Below are positions 5,151 through 64,000 of a DNA stretch of 64,000 nt, one piece after another. The stretch's first letter is position 1; each line of letters starts with the position of its first letter. A model generated the notes under the pieces. The model was not told the DNA's origin and made no database searches. It was given only the letters and a program-made list of their open reading frames with translations. The stretch is from sequence record PQ657772.1; one strand, 5' to 3'. Both the position numbers and the translations under genes were made by a program.

Positions 5151-5633
5151 TTATGCTTCAACTTTGCGATGAGATTCGATCCATTCCTCGCGAGTCATAC
5201 CGCTGGCGTTAATCGCGTCCAGTACTACCGCAATGCAGTTACCACGCACCGGAATCAGATATTCTTCCCCGTTGTCCAGTACTACCGCTACGCGTTCCTG
5301 AATCCATTTTTTGGCTTTTACTTCTGGCTTGTCTTCCCCATACTTAACCGCCAGGGCTTTTTGTGCCATCTCTGTAACTACTTCCAGATCCAATCCAACT
5401 ACTGCCGCCTGAATACTTTCGATTGTTGCTTGTAGTTCTGCTTCACGGGCCGCCTTTGCCGCTTCAATTTCTGCCGCTTTATTTGCTTGTAGTTCTTTCG
5501 CAGTACTGTACGCGATGTTAAAATTATTGCGTACCGCTTTCATGGTATCGTTATCCAGTTCAGCCAGGATCTCAGCCGCGACGTTAGTTTCATTTGCTAC
5601 CAGTGCTTTGATGAATGATTTTACATTAGCCAT
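5151..5633 (-). CDS. divergent H-NS-like protein
   Basis: coiled-coil N-half; C-terminal KAKK..VLDNGEE..RGNCIAVVLDAINASGMTREEWI parallels H-NS [34 protein letters not shown] (H-NS sequence recalled from memory). Confidence 0.6.
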   Translation of the reverse strand: MANVKSFIKALVANETNVAAEILAELDNDTMKAVRNNFNIAYSTAKELQANKAAEIEAAKAAREAELQATIESIQAAVVGLDLEVVTEMAQKALAVKYGEDKPEVKAKKWIQERVAVVLDNGEEYLIPVRGNCIAVVLDAINASGMTREEWIESHRKVEA

Positions 5634-8160: not shown

Positions 8161-8234
8161 TTTGTAACCCTCATTCAGTAGTTTATGTAAGTATTATACG
8201 CTTTTAAAAACAATTGTCAAACTATTTTATCAGG

Positions 8235-8269
8235 GGAGTTTTTCGTGTGCCTTACTCCTGGGCTACTTA
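8235..8269 (-). promoter_or_regulatory. conserved 5'-leader RNA motif, copy 2
   Basis: TAAGTAG..GGAGT-AAGnnnnACGAAAA-ACTCC, downstream of promoter 8311-8338. Confidence 0.55.
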
Positions 8270-8384
8270 ACGGGAAGTTACTTATTTCGTTCCCCGTCCT
8301 GATGTAAAACATTATACGCCTTTAAACATAGTTTGCAAGTACTTTTTAAAAATAGTTTTCAGTACTGAATAGTAAAAAAAAGTA

Positions 8385-8460
8385 TTGACAGCATTATCAA
8401 GTACTGGTATAATATACCCCATGACAACAGCTAACCCACCGGGTGCACAATTGTAACTAT
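8385..8460 (+). ncRNA. promoter-driven ORF-less element, copy D
   Basis: TTGACA-17-TATAAT, then ...CTAACCCACCGGGTGCACAATTGTAACTATA (3' extension shared with copy A). Confidence 0.5.
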
Positions 8461-8480
8461 ACTAAACTAATTTTTCTATA

Positions 8481-8557
8481 GATACACTCCCGCACCCTAT
8501 GGGCTACGGCTTATCTGCCAATGAATACATTATGCCAGTACTGACAAAATAAGTCAA
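8481..8557 (-). ncRNA. promoter-driven ORF-less element, copy E (convergent with D)
   Basis: TTGACT-17-CATAAT, then GGCAGATAAGCC-GTAG-CCCATAGGGTGCGGGAGTGTATC. Confidence 0.5.
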
Positions 8558-8587
8558 TACCGGCAATTGTAAAGATTTGTAAACTGC

Positions 8588-10612: not shown

Positions 10613-10786
10613 CCCAAAATTCAGTACTGAAAAAATTTTTAAAAATATCCGGCCAGGCCGTTGACATTGCCCCCAGTTTATAAGATAATGATTCCAGATT
10701 CAGAAAAATCTAACACCAGATACTGCGGGGAAACTATCCCCACGCGGTAGGGGAACTATTGGAAAAAACAAAATAAAATTTTGATT

Positions 10787-10898
10787 TAGCCGTCTATACT
10801 TCCAGACGTGTAACCATCTAGCCGTTTAGCCGTCCAAACGTCTAGCCATCCAGCCATCCAGAAATCTAGCCGTTTAGCCGTTTAGATGGATAGCCATC
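10787..10898. repeat. degenerate 8-bp-period tandem array (YAGCCRTY)
   Basis: units at 10787, 10811, 10819, 10827, 10843, 10851, 10867, 10875, 10891, all in 8-bp register. Confidence 0.85.
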
Positions 10899-11300
10899 TT
10901 TACTTCCAGACTTCTGGAGGGCTAGACATATCTACGCCCAAAATCCATCCAGGGTAACTACACCCAAAATCCGTCAGTACTATACCATAGATCTATCTTT
11001 TGAAAGGGAGTATTCAGTACTGCCATCATAGCCCTCACTATGTTACCCTAGGAGGATGAAGACCATCATGTAGTACTGAATACTGTTAGAGGGAATCCAC
11101 CAGCTTGTGCTGGTGGCATAATGCTTTAGATTAAAATCAGTACTGACACCATTCTGTTAATATCAGTACTGTTATTACGATTTTCATATGAGGTTCAAAA
11201 AGATGTACCACCACAGGAGGAACTATCTTTTCTGTACTGTCTCACGACAGGAGGTAGAGTAAATGAATTGTTCGCAGCAACTCATCACCCTATGTAGAAC

Positions 11301-11328
11301 ATTATACAGTACTGAATCATAAAGTCAA
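11301..11328 (-). promoter_or_regulatory. sigma70 promoter firing into ORF-free DNA
   Basis: TTGACT-16-TATAAT with CAGTACTG abutting the -10 box. Confidence 0.7.
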
Positions 11329-11801
11329 TAACTTTCTTTCATCTTTCAGTACTGATATTCTTGAGAACTACCCGACTACAAACATCATTATATCCCACAA
11401 ATCATAAACGTCCCAACGTAAATTTCAACTTTCGAAGATCCAACTTTTATTTCATAGGTACTCCAAAATTTTTAGGATCGAGATTTAGGATGGAGTACTA
11501 ACCAACTTTTTGCTGGAGCCTCAAGGGGTAATGGAATTTTACCCCGAAGGGTAAAGGGGTAATTGAAATTAAGGTGAAAGTAATAATTCAGTACTAATCA
11601 TTGCGTGATTACTTTTGATTACATTTGATGTAATTTGCAAAATGGAAAAGGAGCTTGGAAACTACAAAGTACGGCAGACTTCCTCTGCCTACTTAGTGGG
11701 ATATCGCCACCTTCAGTACTGAATACTTTTAGGGCAGTACTGCTACGTTCTTGATTAAACGTGCACATTCCTGTACTCTATTACACTCTGGTACTCAATA
11801 C

Positions 11802-11872
11802 TGATCACTACAATGATTATAAATGATTACTTAAATGTTTATATATGATTACTTATGACTACATATGATTAC
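11802..11872. repeat. helically phased TGATTAC repeats
   Basis: exact or variant copies at 11802, 11814, 11824, 11846, 11856, 11866; also 11606 and 11616. Confidence 0.75.
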
Positions 11873-11995
11873 GGGGTTTAGCCTGGGGAGAATCCTAGTG
11901 ATCGCATTTGTCCAGGCTGAATTTTAACAATTCTTCTAATTGTTAAAGCCTGTCCAATGCTTTCCCTGCGGAGCTTCCCCTGTCTATATGTTGAA

Positions 11996-36832: not shown

Positions 36833-36868
36833 ATTATAGCAAAAAGGGCTGACCGAAGTCAACCCTTT
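36833..36868 (-). promoter_or_regulatory. terminator/promoter hybrid
   Basis: GGGTTGAC-TTCG-GTCAGCCC-TTTTT hairpin holds -35 TTGACT; TATAAT 18 bp downstream. Confidence 0.8.
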
Positions 36869-37415: not shown

Positions 37416-37453
37416 ATTATAGCAAAAAGGGCTGACCGAAGTCAACCCTTTTT
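37416..37453 (-). promoter_or_regulatory. terminator/promoter hybrid
   Basis: same as 36833-36868. Confidence 0.8.
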
Positions 37454-37855
37454 TCTTTCAATCAAACATAGTCTACCAGAATGTACCATGCGATGGTGAT
37501 TAGAACAAAGAATCATACACTTTCGAATTTCATCTTTGATAGATTCTCGACTTTTACTGAACATAGAACTTGGTGTATGTTCTTTGGTATTAGGGTCAAG
37601 ATGGTGAAAGTCTAAACATTCTGGATACTTCATCATACAAACACTACAACCATAAAATGATTTAACTCTGGTCATGAAATCTTTATTTTTTCTTTTGATT
37701 TCTTCAAGTGTTTTTACATCAGTTTTTTTATTTCTGGTTCTCTTACTGGTAATATTACTACAACCTTTGCATGTATTTCTATGTTTCCCAGTATCACTTC
37801 TTATACCAAATTCACTAATGTCTTTTTCAATATTACACGTGATACACTTCTTCAT
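37442..37855 (-). CDS. HNH endonuclease with Zn-finger
   Basis: CxxC..CxxC; CSVC..LDFHHLDP..EIRKCMILCSNHHRMVH. Confidence 0.85.
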   Translation of the reverse strand: MKKCITCNIEKDISEFGIRSDTGKHRNTCKGCSNITSKRTRNKKTDVKTLEEIKRKNKDFMTRVKSFYGCSVCMMKYPECLDFHHLDPNTKEHTPSSMFSKSRESIKDEIRKCMILCSNHHRMVHSGRLCLIERKKG

Positions 37856-42038: not shown

Positions 42039-42075
42039 ATTATAGCAAAAAGGGCCGACCGAAGTCAACCCTTTT
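42039..42075 (-). promoter_or_regulatory. terminator/promoter hybrid
   Basis: TTGACT in TTCG hairpin; TATAAT at 18 bp. Confidence 0.8.
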
Positions 42076-42691: not shown

Positions 42692-42730
42692 TGCATTACC
42701 TCTTATAAAACCCTCTACAATATTTACAAA

Positions 42731-42756
42731 AAAAGGTTGACCGAAGTCAACCTTTT
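42731..42756. terminator. TTCG-loop terminator
   Basis: AAAAGGTTGAC-CGAA-GTCAACCTTTT. Confidence 0.85.
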
Positions 42757-42762
42757 AAATGT

Positions 42763-44801: not shown

Positions 44802-44833
44802 ATTATATATAAAGGTTGACCGAAGTCAACCCT
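44802..44833 (-). promoter_or_regulatory. terminator/promoter hybrid
   Basis: TTGACT in TTCG hairpin; TATAAT at 16 bp. Confidence 0.7.
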
Positions 44834-45580: not shown

Positions 45581-45617
45581 ATTATACGACAAAGGGCTGA
45601 CTGAAGTCAACCCCTTT
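45581..45617 (-). promoter_or_regulatory. terminator/promoter hybrid
   Basis: TTGACT in hairpin; TATAAT at 18 bp. Confidence 0.75.
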
Positions 45618-45620
45618 TAA

Positions 45621-46004
45621 TTATTTTTTAAACTTATGTTTTTCGCCTTCAATAGAGTTCACGATGTCATCATGAATCTTGCGAAGGTTATGAGTTTTCT
45701 TTAGTGCTTCATGTAGTGCACGGAATGCTGCGTGTACTGTTGCCTTGAAGTGCTCTTTAGGAGTCACTTTAAGTTTCTCAATGATATCACGTACATAAAT
45801 TGGATGATCTTCAAATACACGATTCAATTCATGGCCTAGTGATTCTAAACTGAAAGCTTTTTCGCGTGAAGGACGATCATGTGCAAGACTTTGGTCAGGC
45901 TTTAGTAGACCTAGTGAATCAAGATACTTATGCTTATGTGCATTATCAATTCCAGAAATATCCACATCATGCGATGGATCTTTCTTATTCCATTTATCAA
46001 CCAT
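45621..46004 (-). CDS. paralog of the N-half of 42763-44256
   Basis: KYLDSLGLL vs RYVNSLGLL; PKEHFK vs PKEELK; AAGGAG RBS. Confidence 0.8.
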   Translation of the reverse strand: MVDKWNKKDPSHDVDISGIDNAHKHKYLDSLGLLKPDQSLAHDRPSREKAFSLESLGHELNRVFEDHPIYVRDIIEKLKVTPKEHFKATVHAAFRALHEALKKTHNLRKIHDDIVNSIEGEKHKFKK

Positions 46005-49174: not shown

Positions 49175-49210
49175 ATTATAACAAAAAAGGCTGACCGAAG
49201 TCAACCTTTA
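49175..49210 (-). promoter_or_regulatory. terminator/promoter hybrid
   Basis: TTGACT in TTCG hairpin; TATAAT at 18 bp. Confidence 0.8.
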
Positions 49211-49392
49211 TTTTGAAGTTCTTGAACTAATTGTCGTACTTCTTTGATGTTATGACACTGCTTTACAGTGAAGTAATCATACTTACGACCATAGGTTCTT
49301 GGGTCATCACCTTCCATATACTGCTGCACATCAAAGATTTGTAAGTAGGGATGCTGCATAACACGAATGTTATCACATTGATAAATCAACAT
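49201..49392 (-). CDS. hypothetical protein
   Basis: start moved to MLIYQ (GAGGA RBS). Confidence 0.7.
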   Translation of the reverse strand: MLIYQCDNIRVMQHPYLQIFDVQQYMEGDDPRTYGRKYDYFTVKQCHNIKEVRQLVQELQNKG

Positions 49393-49396
49393 ATGT

Positions 49397-49747
49397 TTAG
49401 TCCTCATATTTACACAAGCCACCGAATGTTGCCTGTTTTGCTGCCTTACGCATCATCACAAGTTTAACATACTGTTCGCCATTACTTTCTTCATATACAT
49501 CAACTTGAAGAAATGCAAGCATATTGGGATCAGTATCATTCGAGTACTGCGTAAAACTAATGTCACCTACAGTATGTTCTTTAACAAAATTATACACTTC
49601 ACCATCGATATAAACGATAGTATGGTCATCGCTATCACCTTGGTAAATGTGTTTAATATCACCTTCAGTACAGACTAGTCCAGGTAATGGTTCTGCATAA
49701 GACATACCACATATAATCATACAAACAAAAAACAAAATTACTTTCAT
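49397..49747 (-). CDS. exported two-Cys protein
   Basis: signal peptide; LVC...GLC; paralog of 50138-50503. Confidence 0.8.
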   Translation of the reverse strand: MKVILFFVCMIICGMSYAEPLPGLVCTEGDIKHIYQGDSDDHTIVYIDGEVYNFVKEHTVGDISFTQYSNDTDPNMLAFLQVDVYEESNGEQYVKLVMMRKAAKQATFGGLCKYED

Positions 49748-50127
49748 GATTTGTTTCCTTTGGATAAAATGGATTTCTTCACTTTGTACTGCTTGTAGTT
49801 ATTATACCAAACATCGATTACATAAATCAAGTACCAAAGTGATGGATATAATGATAGACCAATAAAAACTGAAAAAATACTTGTATTAATAAAACCAATA
49901 CAGTGCAGTGTAAATGCAACGATTAGAATACCAATCGTAATCATACTAGCTGAATATGGTACACTATCAGATGCGAACCATGAATCAACCTTACTAATTA
50001 AAGTATACTTTCCAGTACTAACCGCATAAACAATTGCTACTATACCAAATAATGCCATTGAAATAGTTATTACTGAGTTAATAAGAATCGGAGTAATTAA
50101 TACATAAAGCATTACATCGTTGATCAT
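49744..50127 (-). CDS. 3-TM membrane protein
   Basis: hydrophobic segments, basic tail. Confidence 0.8.
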   Translation of the reverse strand: MINDVMLYVLITPILINSVITISMALFGIVAIVYAVSTGKYTLISKVDSWFASDSVPYSASMITIGILIVAFTLHCIGFINTSIFSVFIGLSLYPSLWYLIYVIDVWYNNYKQYKVKKSILSKGNKS

Positions 50128-55448: not shown

Positions 55449-56243
55449 TTAAATTACATATGGTTTATAGTAATGAATCTCGTTTGCGATTGCAGTGAAA
55501 ACTTTATTATTAAATCTTTCACCATAATCACGAAGTGATTCACCTTCTTCGCTTTCAATAAAGTAATTATATACTGGTAGACGTGCGGTGTCAACACCTA
55601 TAAATGATTTCATGTAAATTTGTACTAAACGATTCATTCCTTCATTTAAGCATTGCACCTCAAAGTGCTTGATACCTTTGTCTAAATGTTTGAATGCATT
55701 AATGATACCACGTTTAAAATCACTCTGCATAGTACTGAATAGATTCTCAGGGAACACTGTAATAGGTGACATTGATTTAAGAATGTATGTATCTTTAGCA
55801 TTCTTAATATACTCAATGAAGCAGTAGTTAACGTCAGGCTCGATAGAACGATCAGCGTTATGATACCAGTGCTTAAACTCACTGTACTCAGCAAACTTAT
55901 GCTGGCGTAATGCGTTACAATCCTCACACAATGCAGTCATGTTCTCTTTATCATTACCGCCCTGAAGACAGTCCAGTACATTATGGTCTAACGTCATGCG
56001 TACAAGGCGTTTCCCTTTAAGTACATAAGGTCTGAATTTATAACGGTCTTTAGTACTGTGCTTATGTAAAGTGAATACCACATTGGATTCACCACAACAA
56101 TCACATTTAAAGCCATCACGTGACATTACATGAATGAGTTTTCGAGTATTTGGTCCGAACTCAGATTTAGTAATGTTGCCGACAATTTCTGATGGGTCGT
56201 AGTATTTTGAATTCCGGCGAATCAATTCATCTATAGTGCTCAT
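55449..56243 (-). CDS. HNH endonuclease
   Basis: RDGFKCDCCG..MTLDHN..GGNDKENMTALCEDCN; start moved to MSTID. Confidence 0.8.
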   Translation of the reverse strand: MSTIDELIRRNSKYYDPSEIVGNITKSEFGPNTRKLIHVMSRDGFKCDCCGESNVVFTLHKHSTKDRYKFRPYVLKGKRLVRMTLDHNVLDCLQGGNDKENMTALCEDCNALRQHKFAEYSEFKHWYHNADRSIEPDVNYCFIEYIKNAKDTYILKSMSPITVFPENLFSTMQSDFKRGIINAFKHLDKGIKHFEVQCLNEGMNRLVQIYMKSFIGVDTARLPVYNYFIESEEGESLRDYGERFNNKVFTAIANEIHYYKPYVI

Positions 56244-56244
56244 T

Positions 56245-56472
56245 TTATATTTCTCCAGCAAGACACTCAAAAGTGACTTTTTTAACTTCGATAACTCGTA
56301 CCAAATAGTATCCATGAAAGAAATTAAAACCAATCATTTGTGATAATGCATCTGCTTCAGATTTTGCACGGATACATGATAGATATAGTTCTCGTATATC
56401 GCCATCCAACGATGCTTGTTTCTCGTCATTGATAACAATAGAACGAATCTCAAAACGAACACCATAACTCAT
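56245..56472 (-). CDS. hypothetical protein
   Basis: ATGA-coupled ORF. Confidence 0.7.
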   Translation of the reverse strand: MSYGVRFEIRSIVINDEKQASLDGDIRELYLSCIRAKSEADALSQMIGFNFFHGYYLVRVIEVKKVTFECLAGEI

Positions 56473-56678
56473 TCTGTTTGTCCAACAATTAGTTTTTCTT
56501 TAGTATTACTATTGTAACACCACATTAATTCTTCACCAACTGTTCTAAGTGAAACGCTGTTTACTTGTTCATACGTACTGTCACGTACTGCAATGCATTG
56601 ATTCATTGAATTCATTGGGGTGATTTGTACACCAGATTGTGGTGAAAGAGCAATAATTAAAAAGATTACTGAATTCAT
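56469..56678 (-). CDS. small two-Cys protein
   Basis: GAGGA RBS; promoter 56743-56771. Confidence 0.75.
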   Translation of the reverse strand: MNSVIFLIIALSPQSGVQITPMNSMNQCIAVRDSTYEQVNSVSLRTVGEELMWCYNSNTKEKLIVGQTE

Positions 56679-56809
56679 TAGATATTCCTCAATGGTTAAT
56701 CATCCATCTCTTCGAGATGTCTGTTCGCTTCTAATACTACGTATTCTACGCGAATGAATCATAACTGTCAAGGACTTTTAATATTGACGGGATTTGAGGA
56801 AGGGATTTT

Positions 56810-57235
56810 TCTTCCCCCCGCACGGAGGGAAATTTGACGCTGATGGTATCAGAGCTATTGCATTGAAGATTACTCATAACGAGTGCGAAAGCGGGTCATC
56901 CTGTTTCTCTCTACTTCAGTTTCATATGACGGTCTACACTTTTAAACATAGTGTATCTTCATTAAGTATCTATGCAATCAAATACTTAATGTGAGTACTC
57001 AAATTTTGGACGCAACTTTCCTGTACAAAATTCGATAACTCTCCCTTAGATAATTCGTAAGGTGTTATCCTTATATGTCTATCGAGGAACCACCAGCTAT
57101 CCTAACGTGGTTCTTTATACAGCCGCATTGCCGTGAGGGGTTCAAACTATGCCCACATCTAACGGGTTTCTTTTGCTGTTCGCTACAATGAAAAGCTCAT
57201 CTATCCTTTACATTTTCAAGTGAAGTAGGGGAAGA
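56810..57235. ncRNA. candidate large structured non-coding RNA (~430 nt)
   Basis: no credible ORF; TCTTCCCC/GGGGAAGA closing stem; several internal stems; GNRA loops on +. Confidence 0.5.
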
Positions 57236-57305
57236 TTGTCAGTACCAGTACTGTCATTGTGATTGTACATAGATCATTGTATCACCATTAATAAATTTGT
57301 CCCAT

Positions 57306-57333
57306 AAAAAAAGGCTGACCGAAGTCAACCCTT
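57306..57333 (-). terminator. TTCG-loop terminator after the sigma factor (no -10 box)
   Basis: GGGTTGAC-TTCG-GTCAGCCTTTTTTT. Confidence 0.85.
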
Positions 57334-57338
57334 TAATC

Positions 57339-58307
57339 TTAAAAATCTTCGAACTCATAACCTTTTGTCTTAACCATCTTACGCAGTCGTTCCATTGCTT
57401 CAGAGTACTTACGGTGCAATGAAGAACGAGCAGTCATGACCTTACCCTTCTCATCTTCAAAACCACTCTCAATGATTTCTCGTAGCGTTTCTGGTTCAGA
57501 ATAAGAACCAATACCATGTACACGTTCAATCAATTCACGGTCTTTGGCAGATAGGTTACTCATCATTTCTGCAATACTTTGTACCAGTGGGGTACTGACA
57601 GTTTCTACGCCTAAGTTGTAATCAGGTTCAACTGAAGTAACAATGTCAGATAATGTACTTTCTGAATCATTACTCATTTTCATATTCAATGCTACATAAG
57701 TGTTATTGTAAGTTAGACAATTCTTAACGTGTTGAATCTCAATACCAGTCTCTTTTGACACCATCTCAGGAGTTGGGTATTTACCATGTTTCCTTTGATA
57801 CTCTTCTACACAACGTTTCACATAAATGTTATTAACACTCATATAACGTGGGAAATGCACTAGATAATTAGCATCTGCACTTTCGTTATAGATTGTCATG
57901 TACACAGTTGTTGTTGCATATGTAATGAACTTGACATTTTTGGTAGTGTCGAACGTATGAATTGCTCGCATTAAACCTTCAACACCATAAGAAATCTTAT
58001 CTTCAAATGGGATGAAACATGTACACTTACGTGCAACACTTACTACCATTGGATAGTTGTAGCGAACCAAAAGGTCAATGTTCTTTTCAACGTCAATACC
58101 ATCACGCACTGCTTGGATTAACATTTCATTCGTTAGACCTTTAGGTCGGGTTAAGCTGATACCAGTTTTTGGCTTCTCAAACTTGTGACCGTCATGTTCT
58201 TCTTCTTCTTCGACGGAATCAAGAGCCTCTAATACGTTGACTTCTTCACTAGCAAAACACTCATCCAGTACTTCTTCAGAAATTGCATTTAAATCAAGCT
58301 TTTTCAC
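57339..58307 (-). CDS. sigma70-family RNA polymerase sigma factor
   Basis: region 2 EDKISYGVEGLMRAIHTFD..KFITYAT; region 3 PTPEMVSKETG; region 4 LSAKDRELI..TLREI; GTG start, AGGAG RBS. Confidence 0.9.
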   Translation of the reverse strand: MKKLDLNAISEEVLDECFASEEVNVLEALDSVEEEEEHDGHKFEKPKTGISLTRPKGLTNEMLIQAVRDGIDVEKNIDLLVRYNYPMVVSVARKCTCFIPFEDKISYGVEGLMRAIHTFDTTKNVKFITYATTTVYMTIYNESADANYLVHFPRYMSVNNIYVKRCVEEYQRKHGKYPTPEMVSKETGIEIQHVKNCLTYNNTYVALNMKMSNDSESTLSDIVTSVEPDYNLGVETVSTPLVQSIAEMMSNLSAKDRELIERVHGIGSYSEPETLREIIESGFEDEKGKVMTARSSLHRKYSEAMERLRKMVKTKGYEFEDF

Positions 58308-62965: not shown

Positions 62966-63044
62966 AAAATCCCCTTATTGATATTCCATTTAAGTATACG
63001 TCAAAAACACAACTCAGTCAAGGTGCTTTTTTACCTATCTAGAA

Positions 63045-63059
63045 TAAATACGTTATAAT
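63045..63059 (+). promoter_or_regulatory. TAAATA-N3-TATAAT promoter
   Basis: same motif as upstream of the propeller genes. Confidence 0.65.
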
Positions 63060-63081
63060 AATTATACCAATGGAGGGATGA

Positions 63082-64000
63082 ATGTCAAGATCGATTGCTG
63101 CTGCTGGACAATATAAGTTCGGTGAATGTGGATATGTAGTCGATGGTGCAATTCTCAACGATGGGACTAAACTCAAAAATGTTCGAATCTATCGTCAGAG
63201 AAGCCATAGATTATATGATTTACTTGATCCTGTAAGTAATGTAATTTATCGTAAAGTACAAATTACAACAAAGGATATACAAGGATATCAATTAAACTAC
63301 AACAAAACTAATGACCAAATCCTAAGTGAAATAAGAAAGAACTCTTTTTTCGTAAGAGGATACTCAGATGCTAAACTTGAATCAGATCCTACTGGGTTTG
63401 TTTATAAGTTTCTTTTGCACAAAACAATTCTAGGTAGTTCACAAACACTATATAATATGTACACCCCTGAATGCGGGATTATAGATAGAGATATAGACAA
63501 CATCCTTATGTTCCCAACGTTCGTAGGTGATGATTTGGTAGGTGGTCGCCTATTCAACGCAGGTTCAGCCATTGATACAACTGGAATGCGTATTACCGTT
63601 ATACTTCCTGACGGAACCGAGTACTTCACAACTGAAATAATTGATGATGTTTTTAGTATTCCAGTTGATCCAATTACTCAATCCGGTAAAGGAACCATCA
63701 TACTCACTTCTGACATATATAATACCAAAACTATTGAATTTGATATACTAGAAAGCGGCGAAGATATTGACTTCGTTACTTCAGTACTTCTATCTCAGTT
63801 TGAGTACACGTCCGATGGTATGTACGTGGCAACTGTACCAGCTACTGTGCATGAACGTGGTGAGTATCTTGCTCTACAAGCATACAGTGGTGATTTATTC
63901 CAAATTGGAGTAGACCTCATTGTAGATCCTAGCGGTAATATTACTGTGTACCAAACTGATGATGCTCCAATCTCATTGAGTATTATTGGTAAAACCTTAC
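63082..64000 (+). CDS. probable virion structural protein (truncated by window end)
   Basis: hand-translated open frame MSRSIAAAGQYKFG...; GGAGG RBS; beta-rich acidic C-part; no stop in window. Confidence 0.7.
   Translation, partial: MSRSIAAAGQYKFGECGYVVDGAILNDGTKLKNVRIYRQRSHRLYDLLDPVSNVIYRKVQITTKDIQGYQLNYNKTNDQILSEIRKNSFFVRGYSDAKLESDPTGFVYKFLLHKTILGSSQTLYNMYTPECGIIDRDIDNILMFPTFVGDDLVGGRLFNAGSAIDTTGMRITVILPDGTEYFTTEIIDDVFSIPVDPITQSGKGTIILTSDIYNTKTIEFDILESGEDIDFVTSVLLSQFEYTSDGMYVATVPATVHERGEYLALQAYSGDLFQIGVDLIVDPSGNITVYQTDDAPISLSIIGKTL

Follow-up and report, generated by a model that had tools for sequence, protein, structure and literature searches.

The sequence record PQ657772.1 holds the 356,444-bp genome of Escherichia phage EC.P1, a jumbo phage that has its nearest kin among the Asteriusvirus phages (121Q and PBECO4, for example). 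The window considered here is the first 64 kb of that genome, and its positions 56600-57400 align to EC.P1 with 100% identity and unchanged coordinates. Toward its right end, the gap at 56.78-57.27 kb, which lies between the gene for a sigma-70-family protein and a group of small open reading frames (ORFs) that start at 56678, holds what sequence comparison identifies as a conserved non-coding element, and we consider it close to certain that this element is a conserved structured RNA. The genes that flank the RNA element on either side are carried by the minus strand. A first-pass annotation of the window, made from the letters of the DNA without database searches, had singled out the gap as the site of an unrecognised large structured phage RNA, and this description has held up well: the element is conserved across genera, its helices covary, it contains no conserved ORF and it matches no Rfam family. 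The same annotation had called the gap free of ORFs and the only long non-coding gap in the right 50 kb of the window. There is indeed a gap between the sigma gene and 56678, but a 66-aa ORF that is not conserved (56794-56994, plus strand) lies inside it, and the second statement is roughly right except for a 436-nt stretch without ORFs of at least 60 aa at 62966-63401. Read along the minus strand, the locus is laid out as follows.

57339-58307, minus strand: gene for a sigma-70-family protein, the upstream neighbour of the RNA, given for context only
57303-57335, minus strand: terminator-like hairpin followed by U7, read from the sequence, which would end the sigma transcript
57276-57304, minus strand: predicted promoter of the RNA, with a -35-like TGGGACA (57298-57304) and an extended -10 TGATACAAT (57276-57284)
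56783-57269, minus strand: gene for a large structured non-coding RNA (ncRNA) of ~487 nt, delimited from the profile match, the covariance model and the alignment boundaries
56743-56771, minus strand: near-consensus sigma-70 promoter TTGACA-17 nt-TAGAAT (11 of 12 matches in the promoter scan), which serves the downstream small genes

When compared by BLASTN, the RNA core (56774-57230) is ~70% identical in other genera, and the flanking coding sequence is not detectably similar. The element is carried by 62 phage records, with three to five BLAST places in each; the genera represented include Mimasvirus (CBB, GAP32, XbC2) and Eneladusvirus (BF, Yen9-04 and the SNUABM phages), and further carriers are found in the Munch/7t3 group and in Kaldavass, Hallingskeid and XaC1. 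In these other phages the element occupies an intergenic gap of 600-800 bp with different neighbours, and the corresponding locus of CBB encodes no homologue of the protein that follows the RNA in the window. A profile hidden Markov model (HMM) searched with nhmmer matches the window at 56779-57236, and R1, a covariance model built on the most conserved domain of the RNA (57087-57179), matches it at 57073-57233 on the minus strand (E = 2.8e-36). Over the whole EC.P1 genome the two models recover exactly four copies, at 56.8-57.2, 169.3-169.8, 254.4-254.9 and 306.7-307.2 kb, all in one orientation (E = 1e-27 to 1e-39), and 121Q has three copies, at ~90, 193 and 327 kb of its 348.5 kb, which likewise lie on one strand. 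Paralogues inside one genome are 51-75% identical. In a tree, copies of one locus type from different genomes come together, not the copies of one genome, and two of the four in EC.P1 have loci of other phages as their nearest neighbours and not each other. Much of the paralogy therefore predates the split of the genera.

A 16-base invariant pattern taken into metagenome and genome collections gave mostly chance matches, together with six more full-length homologues and a few fragments. In IMG/VR the pattern matched two or three times per genome, and the profile HMM identified all of those matches as full-length or nearly full-length copies of 450-500 nt. A divergent paralogue used as BLAST query returned again 62 records from the same host genera. 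Because the wider scans and the second query add few or no hosts, the family looks, from the sequences at hand, confined to the Rak2-like jumbo phages of enterobacteria. BLAST found nothing in Rak2 or in K64-1 (Alcyoneusvirus), for which no covariance-model scan was made and in which a divergent copy is possible.

At the sigma-adjacent locus of phage TH47 (MT446416.1, 145869-147342) the window is matched in three pieces that amount to 67% of the query, and the best match of that phage to the RNA core is found elsewhere, at 49394-49866; its sigma-adjacent copy may have been disrupted or replaced. The 212-kb record CAUSEC010000004.1, from an uncultured Enterobacteriaceae metagenome-assembled genome, carries a divergent copy of the RNA with a thiamine pyrophosphate (TPP) riboswitch ~1 kb away (5385-5481 of the piece analysed; 73.5 bits, above the gathering score). 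This record may be a jumbo-phage genome that was binned as a bacterium, and if it is a phage, the TPP riboswitch would be phage-borne.

The comparison of 35 homologues also bears on coding potential. No reading frame is conserved across them, the longest ORF shifts in strand and position from one to another, and, of 519 indel runs, 474 have a length that three does not divide; a decayed gene, which the first-pass annotation had named as an alternative, is not favoured by this pattern. Deposited annotations put two to six small "hypothetical protein" ORFs over the element, on either strand, as in the GenBank records of WPEC3, WPEC5, SD-*, E9.1 and JP4. Because the reading frame is not conserved, these small ORFs are probably false gene calls.

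Fold, strand and promoter of the RNA

The helices of the RNA were defined on a 35-sequence minus-strand alignment (A3), which also supplied the boundaries of conservation, from RNAalifold predictions for both strands and from a strand-neutral covariation scan. Sixteen helices with 91 pairs were defined on the 35 sequences, pseudoknot P6 being additional, and the fold as predicted from the alignment comprises at least 17 helices, three of which are pseudoknots. Over the 91 pairs, 93.3% of the alignment cells form a standard pair, as compared to 75.1% in shuffled alignments and 36-44% when the partners are slid; changes on both sides are seen at 68 of the 91 pairs (shuffled mean, 48.1), and the covariation score is 0.50 (shuffled, 0.19). 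Each of these three values was reached by none of 500 shuffles. BLAST combined with a covariation analysis had been proposed in the first-pass annotation, and it is this combination, with homologues in 62 records and the two-sided changes just given, that carries the case for a folded RNA. The parts of the predicted fold are listed from the 5' end to the 3' end.

57185-57260, minus strand: 5' domain, in which P1 (57254-57260/57185-57191) encloses P1a (~57237-57256) and P2 (57201-57228)
57087-57179, minus strand: most conserved domain, with P3 (57175-57179/57119-57123), P4 (57162-57165/57131-57134) and P5 (57107-57113/57087-57093)
57034-57073, minus strand: pseudoknot of P7 (57069-57073/57058-57062) and P6 (57064-57069/57034-57039), which flanks the invariant AUAAGGGAG
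56993-57033, minus strand: module M, a hairpin made by the inverted repeat AAUUUUGUAC...GUCCAAAAUU
56857-56991, minus strand: 3' core, with P8 (56982-56991/56960-56969), P9 (56972-56978/56857-56863), P10 and P11 (56926-56930/56895-56899), and further P12 (56914-56918/56864-56868), P13 (56907-56911/56887-56891) and P14 (56881-56884/56872-56875)
56784-56853, minus strand: 3' region, with P15 (56841-56845/56849-56853), then a first CGUCA, then P16 (56814-56819/56824-56829)
56784-56791, minus strand: terminal CCCGUCAA, the end of the 3' region

All cells are paired in P3, P11, P12 and P13, and in P9, P11, P12 and P13 the 98-100% of cells that pair are accompanied by compensatory changes at most pairs. 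In the three helices of the 5' domain two-sided changes are found at 20 of 21 pairs. The most conserved domain also holds the invariant single-stranded GCAAAAGAAACCCGU and CACGGCAAUGCGGC, and several other junction and loop stretches, long and single-stranded, are invariant in all 35 sequences. P9 is a pseudoknot between the loop of P8 and a strand 110 nt downstream, with seven pairs that all covary and 98% of cells paired; a second pseudoknot arises where P11 crosses P12 and P13, and the third, P6, joins the loop of P7 to a downstream strand and exists in at least six compensating sequence versions. Ten of the 35 copies have a hairpin with a U-run, in the minus-strand orientation, inserted between P15 and P16. 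Module M, of ~30 nt, is found between P7 and P8 in some paralogues and within P14 in others, and a local alignment between the sequences at its two positions scores 38, against a shuffle maximum of 21. The moving of a peripheral element is typical for RNAs with a defined tertiary fold, and the two alternative positions of the module hint at a tertiary role.

Most of the stems that had been proposed for the gap from the single sequence fit into this scheme, and all of them are present in the window. CATTAAGTAT/ATACTTAATG is P8, with ten covarying pairs; GAACCAC/GTGGTTC is P5, with six; ACTC/GAGT is P14, which covaries; and GATAAC/GTTATC turns out to be the covarying pseudoknot P6. CTGAT/ATCAG exists as the hairpin P15, but its register shifts in other copies and its support is weak. 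A pairing of the two ends of the RNA, TCTTCCCC with GGGGAAGA (56810-56817/57228-57235), can be drawn in the window, but even relatives with 90-93% identity lack it, and it is therefore probably fortuitous.

Since compensatory Watson-Crick changes cannot discriminate between the strands, other evidence was used to orient the RNA, and it makes the minus strand very likely. Among the 91 pairs, the minus-strand reading has 181 G·U cells and 49 A·C cells, or 41 sites as compared to 19, and at the pairs predicted by the folds of both strands 29 sites favour minus and 10 favour plus. From the same alignment RNAalifold obtains a lower energy for the minus strand (-46.9 kcal/mol) than for the plus strand (-28.8), and the mean minimum-free-energy z-score of 18 members is -2.5 and -1.3, respectively. 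P16, a G/C-rich hairpin, has a G·U solely in the minus-strand reading; the terminator-like inserts of ten copies covary and are in the minus-strand orientation; and the minus-strand promoter is kept even where the neighbouring genes face the other way, as in 7t3 and at the 169.5-kb copy of EC.P1. Two observations weigh against this orientation. The window copy taken alone folds better as the plus strand, whose z of -2.5 was equalled by 1 shuffle in 100, than as the minus strand, whose z of -1.3 does not set it apart from shuffles, although neither energy is convincing and the significance of the fold rests on covariation rather than on single-sequence energy; and 19 of the 60 pair sites favour plus, being A·C on the minus strand and G·U on the other. 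Genes next to the RNA are also on the plus strand at the 7t3 and XaC1 loci. A functional plus-strand RNA is nonetheless improbable, in that no conserved promoter or terminator was seen on that strand among the copies compared or in the promoter scan, the G·U cells run heavily the other way, and the frequent minus-strand G·U pairs of the covarying P12, P13 and P16 would turn into A·C mismatches. The structural case for the plus strand in the first-pass annotation had been built on two GNRA loops, one of which (GC-GAAA-GC) proves to be one strand of the covarying helix P13, and the other (CC-GTGA-GG) the junction at helix P4, so that this case falls with them. Its opposing case for the minus strand, from the extended -10 at 57276-57284, stands: the motif is confirmed and is kept in nearly all copies.

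It is likely that the RNA has an independent promoter. The promoter scan reported GGGACA-16-TACAAT with TG upstream for the window RNA, a spacing of 16 nt from the -35-like box to the -10 hexamer and of 14 nt to the TG, and the general layout TGRRACA, 14 nt, TGnTAYAAT lies upstream of nearly all 35 copies on the minus strand, the -35-like box reading TGAAAC or TGGGACA. Of the 18 promoters of this class in EC.P1, 17 are on the minus strand; three belong to copies of the RNA, and many of the members sit in regions of replication and nucleotide-metabolism genes. According to the CBB genome paper, "divergent RpoD-like" TGAAACG/-10 promoters, which resemble the RNA promoter, precede DNA-synthesis genes in that phage (PMC5259590). 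One paralogue type has a strong hairpin followed by U7 directly after the promoter and ahead of the conserved RNA; this feature is found at ~307.26-307.33 kb in EC.P1, and copy c of 121Q, TH47 and the loci of the CBB_b/GAP32_b type have it too. It might serve as an attenuator or as a protective stem at the 5' end, or might be a tiny transcript of its own.

The 5' end of the RNA, predicted from the promoter, would be near 57269, ~7 nt beyond the -10, and conservation begins at 57265. Its 3' end was placed where conservation stops abruptly, at the invariant CGUCA (56784-56791). There is no terminator at the 3' end of the window copy, and that end would be either the product of processing or a point within a longer transcript of which the RNA is the 5' part. 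The sigma-70 promoter TTGACA/TAGAAT begins at most 15 nt past the end of conservation, and equivalent sigma-70 promoters come after the RNA in other genera too.

Comparison with known RNA families

Rfam 15 has no match to the whole window at gathering scores, and with E values up to 10 the RNA region and ten homologous loci give only chance-level matches to small nucleolar and small regulatory RNA (snoRNA and sRNA) models, the best E for the region itself being 0.7. ARAGORN finds no tRNA or tmRNA in the window. The Rfam scan was a step that the first-pass annotation had proposed, and its own failure to recognise tmRNA, RNase P RNA or a group I or II intron in the gap agrees with these searches. 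We found no description of the element in the literature, nor did term searches turn one up in the CBB, Sharanji and PA5oct papers, of which the CBB paper mentions the promoter class alone. We regard the element as a new RNA class.

The placement of the RNA beside a sigma gene had led to the suggestion of a sigma-linked, 6S-like RNA, which does not survive comparison. The window RNA is, like 6S RNA in that suggestion, an ncRNA beside a sigma gene, but the other three EC.P1 copies lie far from it, the 6S model (RF00013) gives no match, whether judged by its gathering score or with the limit relaxed to E = 10, and 6S RNA is a ~180-nt rod with a central bubble, whereas the present RNA is ~490 nt long, multi-branched and folded with three pseudoknots. 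For tmRNA, besides the negative ARAGORN and Rfam results, there is no conserved terminal helix and no conserved ORF. RNase P RNA has no Rfam match, and the CR-V-like ACAGG..AACCCGCUU pairs locally, in P11/P13, and not distantly.

Group I introns of T4-like phages share with this element their several copies per genome, a length of 250-500 nt, a pseudoknotted core and a variable periphery. An insertion in a gene is nevertheless not what is seen here: the element is intergenic and is preceded by both the stop codon and the terminator of the sigma gene, its promoter is its own, its neighbours vary between loci, and there are no exons that splicing could join. The group I core (RF00028) has no Rfam match at E up to 10 and a different order of helices, the topology here being one of loop pseudoknots (P6/P7 and P8/P9) with P11 crossing P12 and P13. 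A group II intron was rejected as well, there being no Rfam match and no long ORF within or beside the element. The guide RNAs of IscB and TnpB (HEARO, or omega RNA) have no Rfam match either, and the downstream ORF with an HNH-like cysteine pattern has no Pfam domain and no homologue at the CBB locus. This 294-aa ORF (55449-56333, minus strand), ~450 nt downstream of the RNA, shows an HNH-like CxxC...HN...CxxC pattern; it has no match in Pfam and no homologue at the corresponding CBB locus. An HNH-nuclease partner for the RNA was dropped because Pfam matches none of the flanking proteins and these lack homology from one genus to another.

A riboswitch or other cis-regulatory leader was set aside, as the genes that follow the element have no relationship from one locus to another and those that one paralogue type faces are on the opposite strand. 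On the plus strand the CTGACGA motifs resemble the core of a hammerhead, but no stem II pairing flanks them and no Rfam model matches, and a hammerhead was rejected. The ROOL and GOLLD RNAs are several hundred nucleotides long, multi-domain and pseudoknotted, are phage-borne as free-standing genes without an obligatory neighbouring protein gene, and have a variable periphery around an invariant core, all of which they share with the present RNA. Their covariance models have no match in the window or in ten homologous loci. In contrast to them, this RNA occurs in jumbo myoviruses of Enterobacterales, in three to five diverged copies per genome, and does not adjoin tRNA arrays, ARAGORN having detected no tRNA in the window.

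The nearest published analogue known to us is in PA5oct, a Pseudomonas jumbo phage related to this clade, for which four ORF-free transcribed regions of 236-619 nt, ncRNA001-004, have been described, two of them highly expressed throughout infection (PMC7318152). Those RNAs were defined by RNA-seq, whereas the present family is defined by covariation. The two that were compared, ncRNA001 and ncRNA002, have no similarity to the profile HMM or to R1.

Possible functions of the RNA

To our knowledge, bacterial and phage RNA classes that are longer than ~400 nt and rich in tertiary structure are rare, and almost all of the large structured RNAs characterised so far that we know of are ribozymes, cores of ribonucleoproteins (RNPs) or, recently, self-assembling cages. 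The covariation of the present RNA is unusually clean, its fold has three pseudoknots and a module that moves, and it occurs in three to five diverged copies in each of ~60 sequenced jumbo phages. We offer, tentatively and with somewhat less than even confidence, the view that Rak2-like jumbo phages may have a large "ornate" RNA with pseudoknots as a class of their own, not described before, whose ancient paralogues are kept at different genomic positions, and that it would turn out to be a ribozyme or self-assembling machine, or to mark the first structured RNA-primed origins in jumbo phages, or to be a new antitermination RNA that acts in cis. Any of these three roles (machine acting in trans, origin primer or antitermination device), if true, would be a new piece of jumbo-phage biology, in genomes of a kind that is more than 80% "hypothetical". 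Several of the carrier phages (121Q, PBECO4, phAPEC6, G17 and Sharanji) can be cultured on laboratory E. coli, and the function of the RNA is therefore directly testable.

The explanation that we favour, which taken whole and with its trans-acting role we would place just short of an even chance, begins with a free-standing ncRNA gene of ~490 nt, read on the minus strand from ~57269 down to 56783. Its own promoter, of the phage-specific class that also lies ahead of replication and nucleotide-metabolism genes, would transcribe the RNA from mid-infection on, and the transcript would fold compactly into several domains, with a peripheral hairpin module that is movable. The resulting RNA would be stable and would act in trans through its folded shape: it might be a ribozyme, might self-assemble in the way of the "ornate" ROOL/GOLLD RNAs, or might join a partner from the phage or its host in an RNP. 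What inclines us toward a trans-acting folded RNA, a role that by itself we also judge to be nearly an even matter, is the presence of three pseudoknots along with invariant junctions and a module that moves. A number of observations weigh against this explanation. The expression, the ends and the stability of the RNA are all inferred. Most copies, the one in the window included, have no 3' terminator, and the RNA could therefore be the leader of a longer transcript. The copies cluster by locus type, with orthologous copies at similar positions in different genera, and a position-dependent role in cis explains this at least as well as a role in trans does. The terminator-like hairpin directly after the promoter of some paralogues is unexplained, and the loci compared show no linked protein gene that could encode a partner of the RNA.

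Two ways in which the RNA could act where it is made deserve to be set beside the trans-acting RNA. In the one, which we regard as unlikely, each copy would be a replication origin at which a middle-type promoter gives rise to a structured pre-primer; the fold would favour a persistent RNA-DNA hybrid near the 3' end, and the processed RNA would prime leading-strand synthesis, working like ColE1 RNA II and placed like T4 oriF and oriG. Transcripts of the latter kinds are ~500 nt long, start from a dedicated (in T4, middle-type) promoter, have no terminator of their own and carry a G-run near the 3' end. The present RNA is similar to them in its ~500 nt, in its dedicated promoter, in being mostly without a terminator and, as regards T4, in having several sites per genome. 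An origin would also suit the spread of the EC.P1 copies (57, 169.5, 254.7 and 307 kb, in one orientation) and the like dispersal of those of 121Q, the grouping by locus type of corresponding copies at similar genome positions, the sharp end of conservation on the 3' side with an invariant G-run and C-run near it, and the presence in EC.P1 of T4-type uvsW, dda and recombination genes, as well as a promoter class held in common with DNA-synthesis genes (PMC5259590). What speaks against origins is the elaboration of the RNA: a conserved fold is not required of T4 origin transcripts, three pseudoknots with invariant junctions exceed the known needs of R-loops, and the structure is far more elaborate than in ColE1 RNA II or the T4 origins and is conserved across genera. 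In addition, 10 of the 35 copies have an internal terminator-like hairpin, no antisense regulator is seen here, and the cumulative GC skew has no inflection at three of the four copies, although the skew follows the direction of transcription and is therefore uninformative as a test of origins.

The other cis-acting role, a quite unlikely one in our estimate, would be that of a leader that folds cotranscriptionally and modifies its own RNA polymerase in the manner of HK022 put, with processive antitermination as the result, or that controls read-through into the downstream gene array in some other way. The position of the RNA, directly after a promoter, co-oriented with long minus-strand arrays and usually without its own terminator, is what such a leader would have, as is the downstream array of the window with its many intrinsic terminators of one sequence family, and dispersed copies would suit one element per transcription block. 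Yet the neighbouring genes run opposite to the 169.5-kb copy of EC.P1 and to its relatives in 7t3 and XaC1, the downstream genes are unrelated between loci and have strong promoters of their own right after the RNA, and some copies carry a terminator within the element. Known put elements are ~70 nt long; the promoter-proximal position fits them, but the size and complexity of the present RNA are unlike the two-stem put. As for a mobile or selfish RNA (a group I or II intron, or a guide of IscB or TnpB), a decayed protein gene or a site that acts purely as DNA, these are taken together highly improbable. Multiple copies, a pseudoknotted core and the ORF with the HNH-like pattern ~450 nt downstream in the window are what one might expect of mobility, but no intron, HEARO or other Rfam model matches, the element stands between complete genes, behind a terminator and with its own promoter, and the downstream protein has neither a Pfam match nor a homologue at the CBB locus. 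The clustering of copies by locus type across genera argues, moreover, that there has been no recent mobility. The decayed gene founders on the want of a conserved reading frame, and the compensatory changes together with the G·U bias argue for pairing in RNA rather than for a DNA site.

Neighbouring genes and other features of the window

The sigma protein encoded upstream of the RNA matches Sigma70_r2 (2.6e-09) and Sigma70_r3 (1.8e-11), and the same Pfam search gave no region 4 match. This phage sigma factor might read the phage-specific promoters of the type found ahead of the RNA. As a guess, a sigma factor without a region 4 match would suit promoters that combine an extended -10 with the unusual -35-like TGRRACA.

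Stretches of the window without an ORF of at least 60 aa in any of the six frames, other than that of the RNA, are located at 10684-11995, 418-1013, 8161-8587 and 62966-63401, the largest being 1.3 kb, and none of them has an Rfam or tRNA match.

The hairpin at 57303-57335 that would end the sigma transcript was missed by a simple terminator scan; in the relaxed Rfam search a weak STnc390-like alignment, to a hairpin plus U's, spans it. A self-BLAST of the window for further copies of the RNA recovered just the family of terminators to which this hairpin belongs, the members of which are repeated, as hairpin-plus-U copies that are 83-96% identical to the sigma-gene terminator, along the array of small genes on the minus strand.

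Copies of the terminator family, from self-BLAST: 36841-36868, 37424-37457, 42047-42074, 42728-42758, 44805-44833, 45591-45621 and 49183-49231
A further copy, from the same comparison: 2396-2423

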